Assembly: GCA_011109175.1 (NCBI GenBank)
Contig: RDEW01000023.1
Span: 786,154-850,153 of the forward strand
Direction of reading: 5' to 3'
Length of the DNA: 64,000 bases
From: Dicyema japonicum
Lineage: Eukaryota > Animalia > Dicyemida
The notes under the pieces are model-generated. The model was not told the DNA's origin. It saw only the letters and a list, made by a program, of their open reading frames with translations, and searched no databases. Position numbers and translations under genes: made by a program. Below are positions 9,276 through 64,000 of the stretch, one piece after another; within the stretch, counting starts at the first letter, position 1, and every line of letters begins with the position of its first letter.

Positions 9276-9965
9276 TCAATCGTTTTTAATCTTAGTAAGT
9301 CGATGATTGAGTGTCAAGGCTGCATGTGAAATCCCCATTACAAGCAATATAACAATGAAAGCAGTGACACAAATGTAGCAATCAGTCATCATCTCAACAA
9401 GTGGGTAAACATGAATGCTCTTTTTGTTTTTTAGGTACAGCAAACTAAATTAATAAAATTCTCACACAGCTGTATAAGTCAAAAGGAATGCAGTCAATGC
9501 TAAACATCTATGCATCCACCTCGGTTGTTCCTGATAGTCGAATAAACTCACAAAAAGAGGAATAACATAGAAAAGGTGCTTTAACTTAAAACAAGTCAAA
9601 CTATGCTTAAATTAGTTGGCAGAGTAATTACACATTTTTTAGAGGTGAGAAGAGAGCTGTCATAAAAATAAAGAATCCAAAAAGAAATAGCAACACCAAG
9701 TCCGATTGGAAGTGCCAAGGAAAAATACAAGAATGTGTATAAATTCTTAATTTTTGAGAATTTGTGAGAAAGACAGCATAAAACTGTACAAATAAATTGA
9801 ATAATCTTCAATTGAGATAAAACAATTTACATAATTCCAATTTGTTAGAAAATACATCTTTGGGACTCCACAAAAATTCATTGAAGGATAAAATATTGAC
9901 CAGGCATAGAACGACTGGTGAATTAAAAAACAAGAATTAAATATTCCACGCCTTGATAAGACCAT
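9276..9965 (-). CDS. AIG1: AIG1/ADTRP (FAR-17a) family multi-pass membrane hydrolase, 4 exons
   Basis: Removing 25, 23 and 21 nt GT-AG introns gives MVLSRRG...YFLTNWNYIIQ...LALPIGLGVAISFWILYFYD...IHLFY...HVYPL...*. The FLT, LAxPxG, FW and VYP motifs are those of the family. Confidence 0.8.
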
Positions 9966-10154
9966 ACCTAAAATATATTATTTGAATATTTAAAAACAAA
10001 CATTTTAAATATTAATTTGATTCAATAAATAAATTTAATTATTATAATTACTGCTAGGAAGCACTTCATAATAACGATCGAGAAAACACGGGCAACCCAC
10101 CTAGGACCTTTTTTTTCTGCTAAGTATGGTGTTGATGATGGTGGGCTAGTAAAT

Positions 10155-12410: not shown

Positions 12411-13140
12411 ATGTTGCCTTCTGTTGATCCTATTGCAGCTTTTAAGGTCTGATCTTTAGTAAACTCTCAGCTCATAGTAATGGGGGATGGTGGTATTGGA
12501 AAGACTACCTTCATTGGAAGACATAAAACGGGCAAATTTATTAAAAATTATACTGCCACAATCGGTGTTGACATCACAAATCTCTTATTTTTCACCAATA
12601 AGGGGCAGATAAGGTTCGATATATGGGACACAGCCGGTCAGGAATCAGGTGGTGCACTCAAAAGCGCGAAATATGTTGGAAGTTGCTGTGTGTGCTCATA
12701 TTAGGTAACTGTGCTATCCTCATGTTCGATGTTACTTCACGGATCACTTACAAAAACCTTGAATGTTGGCGAAAGGACATTCTGAGAGTCTGTCCACAGA
12801 TTCCCATCGTCGTCTGTGGAAACAAGACCGACCTGAAGGAGCGTAAAGTGAAGCCAAAAAGCATTAACTTTCATCGTAAATATGGCTTGCCTGTAGTTTT
12901 ATTGTGTATAAAAGTACTATGACATCTCTGCTAAGAGTAATTTTCAACTTGAGAAACCTTTCCTGAATCTTATGAAGAGGCTTTTGAATATGGATGACAT
13001 CATTTTAATTAAGGCGCCGGATCTGCACCCCCCATTGACGATGATGGACATGGATCAGGCTAAGAAGAACGAGGCTGAGCTCAAGGTTGTTAATTTGCTT
13101 AGTATAGGAAGCCGAAAATGACCCAATCCTAGACGAATAA
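12411..13140 (+). CDS. RAN: Ran GTPase (divergent), 5 exons
   Basis: Introns 12447-12470, 12682-12704, 12893-12914 and 13086-13107. The product has [55 protein letters not shown] and a Ran-type C-terminal extension. Confidence 0.92.
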
Positions 13141-14143: not shown

Positions 14144-15344
14144 ATGTAGTTTCCTTTAAAAATTTAAGGTCACTAGAGAGTATTATTCATTCAAACGACC
14201 CAAAACATGTTCAAGACAAAATAAGGGAATACTTAAGAAGACGGAATATCAATCCTCCTTCCGACGTTTCCAGTCGTTATTGCCCATTAAAAAACAAACG
14301 GGGAAATTTAGGACAAAAAGTAAAGTCGAAAACTGCTTCTCTTTCGGACTTTCACCTAATTCCCGTGGAATGCTTTGGTTATATACCTATGTGAGATTTC
14401 AGTTTTATTTATAGTGTCCTTATTGAGGTGGTAGAGTTCATAAAGTTGGAATGTAACCACATGGGAATATTCAGAATTTCTCCCAATAATCACAAAATTG
14501 AAGAATTACTCCGCAATATAGGAGAGGACGACTGGCTGTCTTCTGCAGGAATCTATGAGGTTGCGGGGGTATTCCTCAAGCTATTGAGTTGTTTTGGGGG
14601 ACCAATAATCGGACCTGCATGGGGACCAGTGATGAGAAAGTGCATCCAAATCGATGATTCTTTATTGTTTTATGTATTGGCACTGCTTCCAGTTGAGATG
14701 ACTTGCTTACTAAAGTTGTCTTGATCTTTATTTAGATATTCGATGAGCTGTTTGTGTCACGTGGGTTGCCGGAGTGAGGAGAATTTGATGGACGTGGTGA
14801 ATTTATCTACGGTGGTGATGCCAGCCGTGATTGACTATGTTAAATGTTCGAGCAAGTCTTCGCTAAAGGAGACTCTAATGGTAATTGATTGAATCACGTG
14901 CAGTTGGACAGGCGGATTGTGGAGAGACTGATAATTGACTGGGAGTCGATAGGGATGTACGACCGGGAGATTCTAACAACCGTTATGGAGTTCCCCAGGG
15001 GTCTGTTCTCGAATATGACCAACTCTTGCGTTAAATTGGCGAAGAGGGCTGCGAGCATGTCGAGAAGCATGTTGTCCTCAAGGATATTGAAACGTGGGGA
15101 GTTGCAGTAGTGATGGGACTAATTTATGTTTAGTGGATCGAAGTATCCACTGTTCAGATTCAGATCGACGAGGGTGCAGAATAGTGTGTGTGACAGTCCT
15201 CAGAGGGATATGAAGAGTTTTGCGAAAGAAAAAAAATCAGTGAAACCATTGGAAGAAGAAAACGTGTCTGCTGATGCTGTTGTTTTCTTGAAGGAGGATA
15301 TGGGGACTGGACTGTTTAACTACTCCACTGACTCTGATAGTTGA
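14144..15344 (+). CDS. RhoGAP-domain protein, 6 exons
   Basis: Introns of 23, 24, 21, 23 and 27 nt. IPIVLIEVVEFI...GIFRISPN (arginine finger)...ENLMDVVNLSTVVMP. The exact start codon is inferred. Confidence 0.85.
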
Positions 15345-27089: not shown

Positions 27090-27900
27090 TTACTAAAAGC
27101 AGTCCCGAGAAAACATAAATTAGTTAAGTTTCCCTTGTTCTGTATTCCTAATCATCCTCTCTGTCAACCTCGACCATGATCCTCTGTTACGCGCTAGTTC
27201 TCTAAGGTAGTCCAGATCGTCCGCCGAAGTTAGTCTCATACCAACCGTCGATAGGGCTTTGTTCAAGATACTCGGAAGTGTCGTTCTTGGCATTCCGCGT
27301 AATCTGTCTCCTGTGTGCGCGGAGTAGTTATCCATTGCGACATTTGCGGGGACCTGGTCATTTAAGCGTACCACGTGTCCAAAAAGGCTCCATCTTGATT
27401 TGAAAATATCATCTGACAACACGCAGTATTTGCATTCATTATAAAGGTTTGCATCAGAGATCTTCATAGGCCAGTTGATCTTACCGATTTGAGCTGAACT
27501 CTGTGGAAAGAGTCAAGACGGTCCATTTCCCGTTTAGAGATTCCCCAAATCCCAGAGTTGTAGGTTAGTACCAGGATGACAAAAGTATCTTCTAAGCCTG
27601 GTGTTTAGTTCTATCCTCTTCTTGTGGCTCCATATTGACGTGCGCTCATAACAAGAATCCTCCTACGAGTAACATCTTCAGAGTCTCCTAGAAGCGAGCC
27701 AACCTTCTTTTGCCTCTCTATGACTCTTCCAATCTCCGATCATTACGTGTAAACATTGTAAACTCCGATTTGTCAGGATTTGCGGATAATAACCATTTCG
27801 AAAATGTGTGGGAGTACACTGAGGATGTGCTAAAGTGTTTGAGTATCCTCAGAAACAAAATCCAGATCGTCCGTTATCTCGTCATAGTTGTTTCCAATCA
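27090..27900 (-). mobile_element. RTE LINE, 5'-truncated copy of a relatively young family
   Basis: RWSLFGHVVR...PANVAMDNY...PRTTLP. It differs at 12 of 115 residues from the copy at 54758-55105 and has a (TAA)n tail. Confidence 0.85.
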
Positions 27901-30200: not shown

Positions 30201-30647
30201 GCGGCTACACAAAAAAGGCTATTAGAATGACATAAAAGTTGTCTACGGACAAAAAGAACGCATTGTCGACACTCTTAGAGATTATAATCTAAATGAATTA
30301 AAGAGGAGGGCATATCCAACGTGATCAAGACAACCTGACGAGCATGCGTAGGATCAGGAGAGGAGATATGCTGCAGAGGGGTAGAATCGTCGAACCAAGC
30401 TGTGAGCATATCTTAACTTTGTTGGGGTCACTAATTTTGTTTTTCCTCTTAATGGTGATCTTGTAATTTAATGAGTAGAATCGTCAAACCAAGCTGAGAG
30501 CATATCTTAACTTTGTTGGGGTCACTAATTTTGTTTTTCCTCTTAATGGTGATCTTGTAATTTAATTGCAGTTTTTAATCAATACAGGAGATTTAACGGC
30601 AAATAGATAAGAGACAAATAGATTAACCGAACAAACCATAAGTGATA

Positions 30648-31743
30648 TTACTGCCTAAATGGATATTCCTTGAGATTTTGATATCTATTATAATCAGCCA
30701 ACAAAATACGATTCCAATCCGAGTACCCTGACGGAAGAAGCCAGCGAATGCAGTCTCTCCATGTCCTCTGGGCTTATCACAAAGTCAAATATCTGGCATA
30801 GTTAACCCACGAATACATCAAAGTTGCTTTTAATATGTTGGGGGTTCAGGCTCTTTGTAACAACTGCTGATCCACGTTCGATGTGAAAGCGAAGGAGAAT
30901 CTTAATATAACACGTGGTGTACCTGAACTGCCGATTTATTGTATTTTCCTGCCAATTCTTTAATCACCTCGTTATCCATGAATGAAATATCTTTCTCTTT
31001 ATCAGCCCTAAACTGAGATAACTGCCTAACCACGGCCTATCTGGGGAACCCAGTGGACTGTAGGCAGTGACTATGATCCCCTGGGCAGCACAGTAGTCGA
31101 TCCAGCTTCGGTTATCGATAAAAGGATGAGCCTCAAACTGATTCACGACAGGTCTGATTTTGCAGACTGCCAGAATCCTCTCCAATTGGGAAGGATTAAA
31201 GTTCGATACGCCAATATTCTTCGCCAGTCCAGCGATTTTTACACCTTCCATTCCCCGCCACGTGTCTTCCAATACTCCAGATCCTTCAATAATGTTTCCA
31301 TCTTCATCACGTGGGAATAATTCGTCCCCTTCCTGCAATAATGACGTACCCCACCTTGAAACTCATGGGCCAGTGAACCAAGTACAGATCAACATAGTCG
31401 AGGCCCAAATTATTAAGGGATGCGGTAATATTGTTTATAACGGCCATTTCTCTGTGAAACGTGTTCCATAGCTCGTATAAGAGACCTCGACTACCTTAGT
31501 GGTCACGAATATGTCGGTCCTTTTGATAGTCCCGTCAGAGATTTTTTCATTTATTGCCTTCCCCACCTCAACCTCGTTTCCATAAACATAAGCAGTGTCG
31601 ATGTGTCGGTACCCCAATGTTATCGCATTACTCACTGAGTTGTAGGCGTCAGTTCCAGTTGCCTAAACTGCTAATATAAATTTCACCTTCCACGTTCCAA
31701 GTCCAATTGATGGAAATGCAGTACGATCAGGGAAATAATACAT
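30648..31743 (-). CDS. AKR1: Aldo-keto reductase (AKR1/aldose reductase-like), 8 exons
   Basis: Introns of 24, 23, 22, 23, 22, 24 and 25 nt. [47 protein letters not shown]. The catalytic D-Y-K-H tetrad is intact. Confidence 0.95.
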
Positions 31744-34760: not shown

Positions 34761-35989
34761 AGGTGGACTTGAAATATTCCTCGGAAGCATTCACATCCCT
34801 TACACACGAATTCAGAAGATCCTTGGAGAAACTTTCGACTCTCTGATGACGTTCTCCAGTCACACGTGGAGGCGTTAACTAAGAGTCTTCGAAAATGGAA
34901 CGTCCTAAAAGCCATTGTAGAGAAGAACCCCTTTCCTCCTACTGTTTGTANNNNNNNNNNNNNNNNNNNNNNNNNNNNNNNNNNNNNNNNNNNNNNNNNN
35001 NNNNNNNNNNNNNNNNNNNNNNNNNNNNNNNNNNNNNNNNNNNNNNNNNNNNNNNNNNNNNNNNNNNNNNNNNNNNNNNNNNNNNNNNNNNNNNNNNNNN
35101 NNNNNNNNNNNNNNNNNNNNNNNNNNNNNNNNNNNNNNNNNNNNNNNNNNNNNNNNNNNNNNNNNNNNNNNNNNNNNNNNNNNNNNNNNNNNNNNNNNNN
35201 NNNNNNNNNNNNNNNNNNNNNNNNNNNNNNNNNNNNNNNNNNNNNNNNNNNNNNNNNNNNNNNNNNNNNNNNNNNNNNNNNNNNNNNNNNNNNNNNNNNN
35301 NNNNNNNNNNNNNNNNNNNNNNNNNNNNNNNNNNNNNNNNNNNNNNNNNNNNNNNNNNNNNNNNNNNNNNNNNNNNNNNNNNNNNNNNNNNNNNNNNNNN
35401 NNNNNNNNNNNNNNNNNNNNNNNNNNNNNNNNNNNNNNNNNNNNNNNNNNNNNNNNNNNNNNNNNNNNNNNNNNNNNNNNNNNNNNNNNNNNNNNNNNNN
35501 NNNNNNNNNNNNNNNNNNNNNNNNNNNNNNNNNNNNNNNNNNNNNNNNNNNNNNNNAGATTTTCGTTGTCAGAGCTAAATCAATGCGTAAGAACCTTACA
35601 TAATGCTTTCTAGGGTTCTGATGACACTTTGAGAGTCTCCGAGATCACCACTTGAACCAATCACGGAGTTTGGTTTGAAAACTGAGAATCTACTTGAGTT
35701 GTTATTGAGTTTTAGCGAGCCGTGGTTGACAGTGCAGCAATCCCCTGCCAAAACTATCCCATCCTTGTATTTACAGCCAATAATGCCGTTTTGTAATATC
35801 CCAATACTATTTTGTGTGTTAAAGCATAATCAGTATGATAAATTAAGGTTAAAAGTGACACACATACCTCATGTGGAGTGTATATTATTTTATTATATTT
35901 TTTAAATATAAATTAATTTAATAACCTTTTAACGTCATGTGGTTCCAAAAAATTCTGAAGTCGCACGGAATACAATAAATATATTACAT

Positions 35990-39130: not shown

Positions 39131-40132
39131 ATTATATAAAAGAACAATTCCTTGTACAAATTACTGTCAATTAGTTTAGATGATCCGAGTTCCCTTACTT
39201 GGCTGCGAATTTTTACGTCCGTTGTCCTCCATTGTATCCACCGCTACCCTTAAGCACTTCCCTCGTGGTTGCACAGGAAATCGATTGGAAGGAGAATTTC
39301 TGGGTCAATCAACTTTCCTTTGCTCGTGACAAAGATAGACGAATTGAGTTTCTACCTTTTTCATAAAACTGAAGGAATTCGACTCCACATCTACGGGTCC
39401 TAGCTTCTATAAATAGAAAATCGATCCATAGATTTATATCGGCCAGCATTCCGACTGAAGGTTCTACCCATCAATGATGTATGCCGAGTGATGTCGTCAT
39501 CAGTGAATCAATGCAAAACCGGATCGTCTGCATAGGTCTCACACGCAACAAAATGAAGTTAGTACCATTTCTTGACTCGGTCCTCCCTTTAAACGATAAG
39601 TTAATATAACTGTTCTTTACTATAATAAAATTTGTTCTCTGCGGAGCTATAAATATTGTCACCTTCCGTACGTGGATTCCATCTAATTTTTTGCATTTTA
39701 TGACATTTTTCCTGACTCTATAATTAAATATAACAAAAATCAACAAACTATCGCTCTATTCCCTTGAGTGGCTTTTTGTTACTTTATAATTTTAAAATAT
39801 CGACGATTTTAATATAAATTACACCATTCAACTCAGAAAACTGTGGATTATACACCGCAATAATTTTCATTTCATTAGTGGAGTTCCCCGTACTAACGGT
39901 GACAAATATTTTGGCTCTCGTAAGAATGCGGACCGTATCGTGAATTGATTCCGTAGAGCATTGGTTTCTATAGAGAATCTCCATGCGATAAATGCATACC
40001 CCACAGCCGCTGCTATGTTGTGTTGGTAAAACTTCTTTTATCAAGTGTAGCGACATTGACCTAACCAATATGGCAAAATTGGTAGTTTTCAGTAAAAATC
40101 AGAGTAATTCCAAACAAAGTAATATTAATTTA

Positions 40133-42098
40133 TTATTCTTTGCATATTAGAGGTTCAGTTTCGTCGGTTTTGACGCCAATCTTAGTGTTTTTGAAAATGG
40201 AAATAAAAGTGGTCAACATGTATGATAACATGCCTAAATTATAAACATAGATTGCCCACATGATCCGTAGATCACTCCAAACATGATCCAAGACTCTTTC
40301 CTAATATGCACACAAATAATAAATGTAAACAAATTAGATATCACCGGCAAAAAAGGCATGAGCGGAGTCTAACTATAAAATCACGGCAAAACCTTGAAAA
40401 CTCCAGAATCAGTTAGCATGGGTATCCTCCACAAAATCAAAAGACACAGAAGAGATATTATGCTTCCAAAAATGAGAATAAATAAGTTTCCTTTATAGGC
40501 GTAAATTCCATGTTTCGTTATTAACGCGAAAATAAGCGAAAAAATAGCTAAACTGATATCATTTTGTACTTGGAATTGCGAGAAGTATTCTACAAAAATT
40601 TTTTTTCTTTTTTGTGAGCAAATTCGCTTCTGAGTAGTTCCCCCTGAAAACATATTTGTTGGAATATCGAATGTTGACTACCATAATGTTTAAAATTGCC
40701 ATCGAAATTAAAAGTGAAAGTCCAGTCAATTCAACGAGGATTTCCGTGGCGACAAACACGGAAAAAAATGCTTACTAAAATTACTAGAATCTACCCACTA
40801 TGACCCCGGCAATGAAGCAATTTCTTTTTATCATAATGTCACTGTCTTTGCTGTAGAATATTTTTGGGATAAGATTATCCAGCATCAAATAATAGAATAA
40901 ATGTCCCACAGCCATGATCTCCCCGTAAATCCTAAACTATGCCGGTTTATGCCAAACCCAGAGATTATTCCGCAGATGCATCCAATAGCGATGCTATAAG
41001 CAAGGAATTTTTCTCCATATTTATAAAAAACAGCCGAGAAAGGTGCCCCTACATCAGTCAAGTAATAAGGGGTCATCATGGAAATCACTATAGTGGAGGA
41101 TATGTAGGCCAACAAGGCGGCCAGCAAAGAGGAGATAATGCTGATTGGAATAGCTTTTACAGGGTTTTTGACTTCACTAACTAAAACTGACCATATACCC
41201 CCAACCAATCACAACGATTATATCGAATCCAGCCAGCGAAAAAAACGCCCCAACCGAGGCTACTATGATCCCCGATAATCCGTAAGGAGCAAATCCTCCT
41301 TTTCCGTAGGTTGAGGCAGAGGTGTTTGCATCCTACAAATAAATTTGAATCTAACAAATTTTATCTTCCAATTTTTTGTATCCGCCAATCGGGCACCTCC
41401 GACAACCACTGTAAACAAGACCAGTCCGTTTAAAATGACAAAGAAAATGGCAATTTTCTTAGAGTTTTCATCCTTGAATAAAAAGATTGCTAAAAATATC
41501 CAATTTATCCAACTCAAGAATCCTAGAATCAGAAGAACTGGGAGAGGGGTGAAGTAACTCATCAAATAGCCAGAATTTACAGAATATAGCGACGAAAAGT
41601 AGTTTGAAATCGCTTTATTACAGAGAGTGTCGATGTAAAAGGACATGGCTTGGTTCATGGTTGAAGCCCCTGGATTGAGAATCATGAATACCGAACACGT
41701 GGCTTAAGGAAAAGAGCAGTCCTAGTAATAATGCAGTAAACTCCCCGTAAATGGCATAACCAAAGGCATAAAATGAGGACGAATGAGGCATTCTGGTCCC
41801 GACCTCAGCGTACACGAGTCCTACGAATTCAGTTGAATCCAAAATTACCGTATAACATGTTTAGGACTGCAGCTATCAAAAAGGCAACGATTGTGGCCGG
41901 TCCCGCCTGTTTCTTTATCATTAAACCGGAGACCGTGTAAATCCCAGAGCCGACGATACAACCAATGCCTAAACATTAATGAACAGCGCCACAAATCATA
42001 GTCAGCTGAAATGGGCCGATGTGTCGGGTTCTCTGCCTCTCCTGGGGGGCCAAGTCAAAATATCGTCGTCTCGTTATGACTGAAAAGAACTTATTCAT
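40133..42098 (-). CDS. SLC7A: Cationic amino acid transporter (SLC7A/CAT family), multi-exon
   Basis: Spliced product: IGCIVGSGIY...AGPA...YAEVGTRMP...GE, GGFAPYG...GFD...EVKNPVKAIP, and a C-terminal FKTPLMPFLP. Introns are 22-28 nt where resolved; not every middle junction was traced. Confidence 0.9.
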
Positions 42099-42789
42099 TT
42101 GATTGTTGTGTGAAGACGTTGACATTAGTTTTATATTTAACGGTTTTTTATCACTTAATTTACTGATAATTTCACAATATCTCGTTTCTAGTGAATTCCA
42201 ATTTGATTATTTAATTTTCAATTTATTAACCACAAATTTAGAAGTTAGTTTAACCTTAAATTGGAACTGATTCAGATGGATCACATGATTGGGGAGATAA
42301 AGAACGGAGAAAACGAAAAAAAACCTTAATTTGATAACAGTCTTGAGTTATCGTTAGATTTGATTAAATTGTAATCATTATGAGGAAATGTTATCGATAT
42401 CAAATTATTTGTTTTTTCTAAATTAAATTTAAATATTTGAACACTTTCAGCTTCTCCAACATGTAATAAGTAGGGCAACCGTTTGCTATAAAATGCTATT
42501 TAATAAAAATGCACAAAAAATTGGAATTTTTATAAAAATAAATTTAATAATTGTGACCGGTTGACAACGACTCCAAATTGAGAACGATCCGCAAAATCGA
42601 TTTAACCGTTAAAGCCGTTTAAGCGTATGACGGAAAGTAACGGTCACCGGTTAAGACAGTTAAATGCGACCCATTAAATATCGGAACTTAACAAAAATTT
42701 ATATTGCTGTCTCTCGGACAGTAAATCAAGCGGGGAAACAGGAAACACTTTATTCAAACAGGAATTAGGAGTTAGTTTAAGGGGTTATT

Positions 42790-47052: not shown

Positions 47053-48381
47053 TCAATCAATTAAAGGGGAATAACTGTAATCTCTCCTTCTATATAATCC
47101 AAATACATATCCCCCCAAAGCTAACAACGGCAACGAAAAAATAACGGAAAACACAATATAGAACAAAGTCATGTTTTCCGGGACATCAGTTCCAACAGTA
47201 ACAGAAAAATGCCTAAAATACGACTATTTTACAACCACGCAGCAAATCCGGTAGACTGGTAGGGGTCTCCGCTGGTCAATGGAACTGTCAGAAAACATGT
47301 TTTTATGGTATCAAGGCCATCTTTGGTGGTTAGGTTAACACCATTAAGGGAATTCACTTGGACCAAATTCCCGTTCTCCCCCGCCGTTTTGGAAGACAAA
47401 TAAATACTCGGCCATTTCATGTATATTTGACCCATATAAGGATCCTTTTCACACAGCACCCGATTCATCTAGAATATGATAACCAAACAACATAAAAGAC
47501 TCCTGGAATGTGAGAATCAATGACCTGTCTTAGTCGACTCATTTCAACATGACAAGAGTTCCCCCACGAAGTGGTAAATTTGAAAATCAAACTAAAATTA
47601 AATAACTCTAATGTTATTAATTTAATATTTAATAATATTTTACTGAGATTTCTTAAATTTGCTGACATAATTATCCGCAATAATTTTAACCCCCAACTTA
47701 TTGTAGCTAAGCTGCAGGTTAGGATACGCCCCTGAGGACTCCCCGTTAATGATGAGCTAGTTATTAATTTAATATTTAATAATATTTTACTGAGATTTCT
47801 TAAATTTGCTGACATAATTATCCGCAATAATTTTAACCCCCAACTTATTGTAGCTAAGCTGCAGGTTAGGATACGCCCCTGAGGACTCCCCGTTAATGAT
47901 GAGCTAAGGAAATTTAAAATTTTACTAGAATATGGAATCCATGTGTTGAAAGGTTCAAATAGCATGTGTTAGGTCCTGATTCGCAGTTACTATAGTTGAA
48001 GGTCCATTTCATGTCACCAGGACATAAAATCGTCTTATTTCCTTCGAGAGAAACGTCAATAATCTAAATTTATTAATTTAAGGTGGTCAACCTCGGACAT
48101 AAAAAATCCAAAAAATTGTTCGTCTTTTAAGATTTTTGATTTATTTGAAGTAAATTTTTGTAAGTCATTGGTAGAATTTTTGACGAATATTTTAGGTGAT
48201 CCAATGTTTTCCACGGAATATTCAACCATTGAGCGGGAATCCACGTAGGTCACCTCAACAAAATCATGGTTGCCCATATCTTTGAATTTTTTGACTGTGA
48301 TCTTAATATTGTACTAAAAATGATAACATTTTTCAGGGAATTATATTTACTGAATAAAAACAACAAGACAACAAAAAACAT
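47053..48381 (-). CDS. GLMP: Glycosylated lysosomal membrane protein (GLMP/NCU-G1)-like
   Basis: Signal peptide MFFVVLLFLF; VEYSVENIGSPKIFV; C-terminal DPYQSTGFAAWHFSVTVG..P, a TM helix, and tail RRRDYSYSPLID* (YxxPhi). One exon is tandemly duplicated (147 bp), probably an artifact. Confidence 0.7.
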
Positions 48382-48899
48382 GAATTATAATTAATTTTTA
48401 ATTAATTATTTCAAATTAACTTTGTAAATTTAATTTTTATTTAAAATAAATTATTTTTAATGTGGATTTTGTAATTTATTTTTATATTCATAACACCGAA
48501 CCGACGCCTCTGGAGGCCCATATGATACTCGACTCCAGAATGCAGGAATCCAGCCCGTCCTGAACGATCATGCGCGGGCACGAGGTAGGAACACCGGTCA
48601 AAGATGAGCTCAATGGGTTCCGCGATTTTGGGATTCTAAATAATAATAATAAATTCATATTATTATTTAGAAAAATGGAATTTTTTTCAATTTTTTTCAG
48701 AACTCAATAGCCGCCATCATCCAGTCAGACTTCTTTGAGGTAGTTGATAGGCAGGTAGTTGTGGTTTTTTTAGTTGCCAGATTGAAGCAAGCATCCAATT
48801 TTCTCCTCGTGAGGGTTAACAAAATCGATAATTGCTCTGTCCTACATGATAGCAGCTAGTCTCCTACAAGTTACTAATGTCGTGGGACTAGATAATGCC

Positions 48900-54539: not shown

Positions 54540-56460
54540 TTGCAGAGGACTTAAACAACCTCACAAGAGACACCAACTGGTATGCGACCTAGCCACAAGA
54601 AGAAGATAGGACTAAACACCAGGCTTAGAATATACAAAGCTTTTGTCATCCCAGTAATAACCTACAACTCTGGGATTTGGGGAATCTCTAAACGGGAAAT
54701 GGACCGTCTTGACTCTTTCCACAGAGTTCAGCTCAAATCGGTAAAATCAACTGGCCTATGAAGATCTCTGATGCAAACCTTTATAATGAATGCAAATACG
54801 GCGTGCTGTCAGATGATATTTTCAAATCAAGATGGAGCCTCTTTGGCCACGTGGTACGCTTAAATGACCAGGTCCCCGCAAACGTCGCAATGGATAACTA
54901 CTTCGCACACACAGGAACCAGATTTCGCAGAAGGCCAAGAACGACACTTCCGACTATCTTGAACGAAGACCTATCGACGGTTGGTATGAGACTAACTTCG
55001 GCGGACGATCTGGACTACCTAAGAGAATTAGCGCGCAATAGAAGATCATGGTCGAGGTTAACGGAGAGGATGATTAGGAATACGGCACAAGGGAAACTTT
55101 ACTAATTTATGTTTTCTCGGGAGTGCTTTTAATAATAATAAACTTAGGAAGACACAGGATATAATACAGTAAACTCTCCCAAATTTGCCATTTTTGGTTC
55201 CAGCTCTTTGTTTTAAACGTTCTCAAAAAGATCCTTTTCAATTTCGTTTAAATCGGATGCTATTTCATTCTTGTTTAGGGATTTCATTTCAGTAGTTTCT
55301 TCGTGGATGAGTATCTCATTATCATAAATTAATGATGTTATTTCTTCTTTATCCATTGCATTTTTTCAGAAAAATTTATAGACAAATTTTTCGATTTNTA
55401 TTGAAACTCGACAAAAAAAGAATTTGATAATAAATTTCAAATTCTATTTAGGTTTAATCAAATCATACAAAACATGTAAACTTTTTTCCAAGTGGGGAAA
55501 TTATCATAATATTGGAGAAACACTAATTATTCCTGCTGCAGAAATAATTTTATCTCAAGTTCAAAATGTGGATTCAGATTAAAATGTTGTTAAACTTTGG
55601 GAGTTTTTGATTGAGGTGGTGACTACATCTCTATTGCACTATGTCTTATTCGTATTCTTTACCGACTTCTCCGTTCACTCTGGGAACTTTCAATTGCAGA
55701 GGACTTAAACAACCTCACAAGAAACACCAACTGGTATGCGACCTAGCCACAAGAAGAGGATAGGACTAAACACCAGGTTTAGAATATACAAAGCTTTTGT
55801 CATCCCAGTAATAACCTACAACTCTGGGATTTGGGGAATCTCTAAACGGGAAATGGACCGTCTTGACTCTTTCCACAGAGCTCAGCTCAAATCGGTAAAA
55901 TCAACTGGCCTATGAAGATCTCTGATGCAAGACCTTTATAATGAATGCAAATACGGCGTGTTGTCAGATGATATTTTCAAATCAAGATGGAGCCTCTTTG
56001 GCCNAACGGGAAATGGACCGTCTTGACTCTTTCCACAGAGCTCAGCTCAAATCGGTAAGATCAACTGGCCTATGAAGATCTCTGATGCAAACCTTTATAA
56101 TGAATGCAAATACGGCGTGTTGTCAGATGATATTTTCAAATCAAGATGGAGCCTCTTTGGCCACGTGGTACGTTTAAATGACCAGGTCCCAGCAAATGTC
56201 GCAATGGATAACTACTTCGCACACACAGGAACCAGATTTTGCAGAAGGCCAAGAACGACACTTCCGAGTATCTTGAACGAAGACCTATCGACGGTTGGTA
56301 TGAGACTAACTTCGGCGGACGATCTGGACTACCTAAGAGAATTAGCGCGCAATAGAAGATCATGGTCGAGGTTGACGGAGAGGATGATTAGGAATACGGC
56401 ACAAGGGAAACTTTACTAATTTATGTTTTCTCGGGAGTGCTTTTAATAATAATAAACTTA
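54540..56460 (+). mobile_element. Two tandem copies of the young RTE 3' fragment inside a roughly 1.2-1.3 kb duplication joined by n
   Basis: ORFs 54758-55105 and 56072-56419 are almost identical, and the flanks are duplicated too. Confidence 0.8.
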
Positions 56461-63252: not shown

Positions 63253-64000
63253 ATGAGTCAAAGTATCAGACAGAATAGAAGCCTGGAACAAAAAGGCAGC
63301 AAAGCCTCGGTAAGCCATCCTCAGTCTTTGCAATTTTAATCATTTGCGTGTATTATTCCCTGTAGTATTAACTTTATATTGACTTAGCGTTGATATGCTC
63401 TAATTTAAGTGATTTTAACAACTCGCCGTTTATTTTTTGAAAATTTTATGAATTTTCAGAGCTTAAATCTCCGAACTCCCAGAAAAAATAGGGAAGACAC
63501 AATTGTGGGAAAATATAGATTCGTCCGAACTCTCGGAAAGGGCAACTTTGCTAAAGTGCTCCTCGCCAAGCACATTCCCACGGAACATTTGGTACCTTGA
63601 CTTGTATATTCCTTTAGGTTGCTGTGAAAATCATAGACAAAACTCAGCTGAACAAAAACAGCCTTGAAAAAGTAATTTCAATCTTTACATCTAGCTACAC
63701 AGGGAGGTCAGAATGCTGGAAAAGATTGATCATCCAAACATCGGTACCTCTCTTTTTTAGTTCAGTCAAACTATACGAAGTCATTGACCGTGAAACAACC
63801 CTTTACCTTGTCATGGAATATCTGTCTGGGGGTTGATTTTTTGCTCATTGTAGGTGAGATTTTTGACTACCTGGTGGCTCACGGGAGAATGAAGGAGAAG
63901 GATGCTCGAGCCAAATTCAGGCAGGTATATTCCGAGATCATGGTAGATTGTGACAGCCATGGAGTATTGCCACCAAAAATTTATCGTCCACCGTGATTTG
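63253..64000 (+). CDS. MARK: MARK/Par-1 serine/threonine kinase, 5' part (runs off the window)
   Basis: Introns of 150, 26, 23, 22, 22 and 22 nt. [17 protein letters not shown]...[37 protein letters not shown]...[37 protein letters not shown]...HRDL. Confidence 0.95.

Follow-up and report, generated by a model that had tools for sequence, protein, structure and literature searches.

Introns shorter than 30 nt are known among animals only from Dicyema japonicum and from myxobolids (Hadjez 2026, PMC13644364). The length of dicyemid introns was reported as 26.2 +/- 1.9 nt (Aruga 2007, PMC2222250) and as 24.9 +/- 2.5 nt in a study that described their 5' signal as the weakest known (Irimia & Roy 2008, PMC2483917). 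For the D. japonicum genome a mean intron length of 38 nt, a GC content of 36.7% and 4.1% of gaps were given (Lu 2019, PMC6736024). The splicing signals are reduced to GTa...AG, with two or three weak As upstream of the AG, and in the logos of the D. japonicum length classes their distance from the AG grows with intron length (PMC13644364). The authors of the latter work left the recognition mechanism open and called for more study. How an animal spliceosome recognizes introns of 22 nt with almost no consensus is an open question.

The choice of the 3' splice site has been described in larger introns and in other very small ones. Mammalian splicing takes the first AG that follows the branch site, with the exception of AGs located near this site (PMC9284458, with reference to Smith 1993 and Chua & Reed 2001). 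Natural mammalian AGs lying no more than about 6 nt from the branch are benign (PMC9284458). In the 15-16-nt introns of Stentor coeruleus, the branch A has a set place 5 nt before the 3' G, position 10 in the 15-nt and position 11 in the 16-nt introns (PMC9505925).

In this work we analyzed the introns in a 64-kb stretch of D. japonicum DNA (referred to below as the window). The window has 34-40% GC, is interrupted by assembly gaps and is for the most part made up of LINE/reverse-transcriptase debris; an Rfam scan of its full 64 kb gave no match. Three near-identical 130-codon ORFs were revealed at 27123-27512 on the minus strand and at 54713-55102 and 56027-56416 on the plus strand (LFPQSSAQIGKINWPMK...). 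They are copies belonging to one repeat family, which probably represents the 3' part of a LINE.

Introns of the window and their placement

In total, 28 introns were rebuilt within the window in six genes (AKR, Ran, MARK, CAT, RhoGAP and ZIP), and these are referred to as the verified set. First, all GT...AG pairs of 12-100 nt (mostly 12-60 or 12-70 nt) that join stop-free exon frames were collected; the candidate joins were then checked against homologues. Frame joins served to include one further intron in the RhoGAP gene and two in the ZIP gene. Several joins were equally open at the CAT junction 40681-40548, in the gene at 47053-48703 and in the PSMB4-like gene, and these were left out. 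A Viterbi gene finder that used ORFs only, with a flat intron-length prior, was tried and dropped: it wrongly called AKR introns of 14 and 13 nt, because the codon bias in the window is just about 0.16 bit per codon.

All 28 introns begin with GT and end with AG. Their lengths are 22 nt (nine introns), 23 nt (six), 24 nt (seven), 25 nt (two), 26 nt (three) and 28 nt (one), with a mode of 22 nt and no verified intron below it. This narrow spread of 22-28 nt fits the dicyemid class of ultra-short introns (about 20-30 nt). The donor signal is GTa, with an A frequency of 0.50 at +3, and positions +4 to +6 are near background (28 introns). Removal of the introns restored an open frame colinear with the homologues in AKR, Ran and CAT and, via unique joins, in MARK.

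The AKR gene encodes an AKR1B-like aldose reductase in the standard genetic code, from an ATG at 31743 to a TAA stop at 30650-30648 (Table 1). Residues 9-309 of its product align with pig and human AKR1B1 (1dla_A and other chains; E 5e-90), and its best matches are animal AKR1B proteins. The alignment is gap-free at six of the seven junctions. A one-residue indel is found two residues past junction 4, and no other choice of AG could yield it. In intron 1, the use of the AG ending at position 16 or of that ending at 19 would cause a frameshift. Just 3' of the gene, at 30420-30560 on the minus strand, there is a direct repeat with a unit of about 70 nt (ttaaattacaagatcaccattaagaggaaaaacaaaattagtgacccc...).

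The gene designated CAT encodes a cationic amino-acid transporter, as follows from its matches to Pfam AA_permease and AA_permease_C and to CAT1 structures; its reading as catalase was rejected. Nine introns were placed in it, of 24, 28, 22, 23, 25, 26, 24, 24 and 26 nt. Across the 25-nt intron 41205-41181 the product follows the CAT1 numbering (9uat_A) through residues 232-268, the split codon 269 and residues 270-342 without a gap. Here the product would gain two residues with the AG ending at 19 and one residue with an alternative donor at 41198. The latter GT is lost in the DNA of the other sample (C>T on the plus strand). For the intron 40957-40932 there is a single short GT-AG join of the two exon frames, the other candidate being 59 nt long; the upstream exon is homologous to CAT1 and the downstream exon has no match of its own. 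A match of one CAT exon to a repeat protein, obtained in a search of protein representatives, was spurious, this exon being a poor choice for such a search. It should be added that runs X1-X4, all from one sample and listed as possible RNA, are genomic DNA: over 39900-42500 they gave colinear 2.5-kb contigs with about 1.7% differences and no joints.

The exons of the Ran gene correspond to Ran residues 13-82, the split codon 83, residues 84-145 and residues 146-202 with no gap. From this colinearity the introns have 24, 23 and 22 nt, and the in-frame alternative donors, with which two of them would have 17 and 19 nt, are rejected. The placement of the last Ran intron, based on the acidic C-terminal tail, is probable. 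In the MARK kinase gene five introns (26, 23, 22, 22 and 22 nt) were placed, each of them the sole short join matching the kinase sequence. For the MARK intron 63744-63765 the other candidate GT-AG join, of 37 nt, would delete conserved kinase residues.

Introns or candidate joins were also seen in other genes of the window. A FAR-17a/AIG1-like membrane protein gene at 9279-9977 on the minus strand (Pfam PF04750, E 4e-9) has probable introns of 25 and 26 nt. Within the gene at 47468-47968 on the minus strand, whose family was not recognised, a segment of about 49 codons is duplicated in tandem, with SSSLTGSPQGRILTCSLATISWGLKLL... occurring twice, and the introns of this gene have stacked in-frame GTs giving 20, 23 or 26 nt. 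A proteasome beta-7 (PSMB4)-like exon at 35599-35829 on the minus strand adjoins a 606-N gap. No GT-AG join of 21-28 nt connects it to the upstream exon, the only candidates being 44 and 53 nt long.

Table 1. Genes and introns of the window referred to in the text (positions are those of the window; positions of AGs and As are counted from the donor)
Feature	Position	Strand	Length	Remarks
AKR1B-like aldose reductase gene	30648-31743	-		8 exons, 7 introns; 310-aa spliced product
AKR introns 1-7	31686-31663, 31494-31472, 31354-31333, 31030-31008, 30922-30901, 30816-30793, 30709-30685	-	24, 23, 22, 23, 22, 24, 25 nt	
AKR intron 1	31663-31686	-	24 nt	gtgaaatttatattAGcAGtttAG; AGs end at 16, 19 and 24, only 24 used; As at 15 and 18
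AKR intron 4	31008-31030	-	23 nt	AG ending at 18 (ctcAG) skipped, 23 used; A17 seventh from the 3' end
CAT intron	41181-41205	-	25 nt	in-frame AG ending at 19 skipped, 25 used; A18 belongs to the skipped AG
CAT intron	40932-40957	-	26 nt	AG ending at 21 skipped, 26 used; As at 18 and 20
CAT intron	40771-40794	-	24 nt	AG ending at 20 skipped, used AG 4 nt on; unique join
CAT intron	40369-40392	-	24 nt	AG ending at 20 skipped, 24 used; downstream exon matches AA_permease_C
Ran intron 2	12682-12704	+	23 nt	in-frame alternative donor (17 nt) unused; internal As at 17 and 19
Ran intron 3	12893-12914	+	22 nt	in-frame alternative donor (19 nt) unused; Ran numbering ...145/146...
Last Ran intron (probable)	13086-13107	+	22 nt	AG ending at 17 skipped, 22 used
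MARK kinase intron	63744-63765	+	22 nt	gtacctctcttttttAGttcAG; AG ending at 17 skipped, 22 used; A16 is the only internal A
Candidate intron, RhoGAP gene	14715-14735	+	21 nt	in-frame alternative of 18 nt
Candidate intron, FAR-17a/AIG1-like gene	9465-9445	-	21 nt	alternative of 48 nt

Skipped AGs and the length floor

In eight of the 28 introns there are internal YAGs that end 16-21 nt from the donor, nine in all, and none of them is used. All nine are TAG or CAG, with the same pyrimidine at -3 as in the used acceptors. They are located 4-8 nt before the used AG (9/9), the nearest one in each intron being at a distance of 4-6 nt. For five of the nine, the A falls exactly on the seventh base from the 3' end of the intron. 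The skipped AGs are followed by T (eight cases) or C (one case) and never by a purine; the used ones have G or A at +1 in 20 of the 28 introns. If used, eight of the nine would lead to a frameshift.

Shuffling of the intron interiors gave 6.3 +/- 2.3 internal AGs expected to end at 16-21 nt, so that the nine observed are neither enriched nor depleted. What goes beyond chance is the complete disregard of the AGs at these distances, together with the absence of introns shorter than 22 nt. In addition, eight in-frame alternatives that would give introns of 13-20 nt (seven GTs and one AG) are all unused; they are ruled out by the gap-free colinearity with solved homologues.

The rule that the acceptor is the first AG ending at least F nt from the donor predicts 25 of the 28 introns at F=20, 27 at F=21, all 28 at F=22 and 19 at F=23. 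The sharp length floor is real in the window. An earlier note on this DNA had listed six introns with skipped upstream TAG or CAG (AKR introns 1 and 4, MARK, Ran and two CAT introns), and all six cases hold, the Ran case as a probable one only. The same note had put the floor at about 21 nt and had taken 21 nt for the length of the shortest confidently placed introns. The sharpness of the floor is borne out by our data; its best value is F=22, the AG at 21 being skipped in CAT 40957-40932, and the shortest verified intron has 22 nt.

A positioned adenosine and the choice of the acceptor

The introns are poor in conserved signals, and an A is nevertheless found at preferred positions in their 3' parts. 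An A occupies position 16 from the donor with a frequency of 0.54 (p 0.005) and the seventh base from the 3' end with a frequency of 0.57 (p 0.001), compared with 0.23 in the intron interiors (28 introns); the p-values were obtained in shuffle tests with the maximum taken over columns. An A is present at positions 15-19 in all 28 introns (p 1e-4), and in 26 of the 28 an A is located 5-7 nt before the 3' G, at L-7 to L-5 (p 5e-5). Its context, a weak one, is T-y-A-T/G: T has a frequency of 0.64 two bases upstream, G is absent one base upstream, and T or G follows. After the A come three or four residues, mostly T, and then the YAG.

The candidate site is narrowed down by the introns that are poor in A. 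Internal As occur only at 5 and 16 in MARK 63832-63853, and Ran 12682-12704 has two, both in the 3' part (Table 1). In MARK 63744-63765, A16 is the only candidate branch adenosine, since no other A is present in the interior. If the branch nucleotide is an adenosine, the acceptor skipped in this intron is the branch site itself.

These data point to the following scheme. The introns would be U2-type GT-AG introns of the ordinary kind, reduced to the smallest size that is physically possible. In them the putative branch adenosine would be found about 16 nt from the donor, never less than 15 nt, and about 6 nt ahead of the 3' G. The catalytic centre would be out of reach in step 2 for an AG situated upstream of the branch A, for one that includes it and for one whose end is less than about 5 nt past it. 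With the branch-proximal AGs kept from this step, the first AG at least 5 nt downstream of the branch A would serve as the acceptor. The floor of about 21-22 nt would then be the sum of the minimum donor-to-branch and the minimum branch-to-AG distances. Thus, AGs less than 22 nt from the donor are probably ignored for the reason that they lie on or beside the branch-point A; this would be the classical rule working at a very small scale and not a new ruler. We assign to this reading a probability of about 0.6. We infer both the role of the A as branch point and the steric exclusion of the nearby AGs, the branch sites being deduced from base composition.

Expressed as a rule (the first A at position 15 or beyond, then the first AG with its G at least 5 nt on), this scheme predicts 28 of the 28 introns. 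The rule contains two parameters that were fitted, and the data used to test it are those that suggested it; a ruler counted from the donor reaches the same 28/28 with one parameter. Moreover, even the best A column contains A in only 54-57% of the introns, and no branch signature was detected in 41 dicyemid introns by Irimia & Roy (2008, PMC2483917), which counts against a branch-point reading.

Next to this reading stands a ruler anchored at the donor, in which the first AG ending at least about 22 nt from the 5' splice site is taken whatever lies between and the branch nucleotide is set by distance. For the dicyemid spliceosome, distance from the 5' splice site would then be the main determinant of the branch nucleotide as well as of the acceptor, with almost no reading of sequence, and if true this would be an unusual way of choosing the 3' splice site for an animal. 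It agrees with the sharp optimum at F=22, with the coincidence of the modal length and the floor and with the disregard of the eight in-frame decoys, and dicyemid splice-site signals are indeed very weak (PMC2483917, PMC13644364). Against it speaks the positioned A, which is significant and has branch-like flanks. The key prediction of the ruler concerns internal AGs ending at 22 nt or later, of which only about 0.6 are expected in the set, and it has no power here. We consider the donor-anchored choice unlikely, both as a rule for the acceptor and as a description of how the dicyemid spliceosome works.

The two models differ in the candidate introns of 21 nt found in the RhoGAP and FAR-17a/AIG1-like genes, where the exons flanking both have weak Pfam and PDB matches. 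In an extended set, in which five unverified introns including these two were added to the 28 (n=33), the branch rule predicts 33/33 and the donor ruler at most 32/33, because an AG at 21 would be used in both candidates and is skipped in CAT 40957-40932. No single threshold fits if both candidates are real, the ruler at F=22 or F=21 then missing one or two introns. This advantage of the branch rule is thin, the 21-nt introns being candidates.

The earlier note had favoured a ruler-like choice of the first AG beyond about 21 nt rather than branch-point scanning. The ruler itself does describe the verified set at F=22; its preference over scanning is not supported, as the two-step branch rule describes the set equally well. 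The note had named beforehand, as an observation that would speak against the ruler, a branch-point motif explaining the choice independently of distance. Such a motif is arguably present, namely the positioned T-y-A-T/G with the skipped AGs on or next to its A, and for this reason the claim of a ruler in place of branch-point scanning is not supported. The word 'undescribed' in the note is too strong, since the bypass of AGs near the branch site is established (PMC9284458).

Local context of the AGs was considered as well. In this case the used acceptors would be YAGs followed by a purine and the skipped AGs would have a poor +1 base, in line with the lack of purines after all nine of them. 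However, eight of the used AGs are themselves followed by a pyrimidine, and the pyrimidine at -3 is common to all skipped and used AGs. The skipped AGs lie in a zone that is T-rich anyway, with a chance of about 0.02 for no purine in nine. Local context is an improbable basis for the choice. The absence of purines at +1 is weak evidence that the skipped AGs are not wholly invisible, and the pattern may reflect a weak purine preference or selection against decoys in a strong context.

It is about as improbable, or slightly more so, that the upstream AGs are used at some rate and that the frameshifted products either undergo nonsense-mediated decay or are tolerated noise. A frameshift would follow from the use of eight of the nine, and homology sees the productive form only; furthermore, in Paramecium bursaria alternative 3' sites are mostly out of frame (PMC12862383). 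On the other hand, the AGs at 16-21 nt are not depleted (nine against 6.3 expected), and so they appear to cost little, and the in-frame AG ending at 19 in CAT is likewise not the conserved form. Finally, wrong gene models are a most improbable source of the pattern: the ORF-only Viterbi model did mis-call introns and several junctions in poorly conserved genes are ambiguous, but the AKR, Ran and CAT junctions are colinear residue by residue with solved structures.

Comparison with known systems

The branch-point reading gives a testable geometry, in which a branch-like A lies about 16 nt from the donor, the acceptor follows about 6 nt on, and decoy AGs and GTs are ignored. If it holds genome-wide, it would define the smallest distances from donor to branch and from branch to acceptor with which a metazoan spliceosome works. 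Gene prediction would benefit as well in the genomes of dicyemids and myxozoans, in which introns are misplaced by callers based on ORFs.

The ultra-short introns of dicyemids and myxobolids belong to the same class as those of the window, with 22-28 nt here, GTa...AG and weak As before the AG. The papers describing them (PMC2222250, PMC2483917, PMC6736024, PMC13644364) contain neither a table of unused AGs nor a floor rule. According to Hadjez 2026 (PMC13644364) the As move away from the AG with intron length, which suggests anchoring at the 5' end and is not clearly so in the window: in introns of at least 24 nt the A looks slightly better anchored to the 3' end.

In mammalian scanning with its AG exclusion zone (Gooding 2006, PMC1431707; PMC9284458), AGs at the branch or a few nt from it are bypassed and are tolerated in natural introns, as those of the window would be under the branch-point reading. 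The dimensions are different, since the putative branch-to-AG distance is about 5-7 nt here versus 18-40 nt in mammals, a real polypyrimidine tract is absent and the whole intron has 22-28 nt. The introns of Stentor coeruleus (PMC9505925) resemble those described here in their weak other signals and U-rich interior and, under the branch-point reading, in their fixed geometry. Stentor is a ciliate, and its A is invariant in about 91% of the introns compared with about 55% here, the donor-to-branch distance being about 10 nt there and a putative 16 nt or so here. Paramecium (20-35 nt) and the Bigelowiella nucleomorph (18-21 nt) likewise have narrow intron lengths pressed against a lower limit and degenerate signals, in other lineages and with floors other than that of the window. 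The floor found in this work thus matches a known constraint, the minimum donor-to-branch plus the minimum branch-to-acceptor distance, here in an animal and with putative values of about 16 and about 6 nt.
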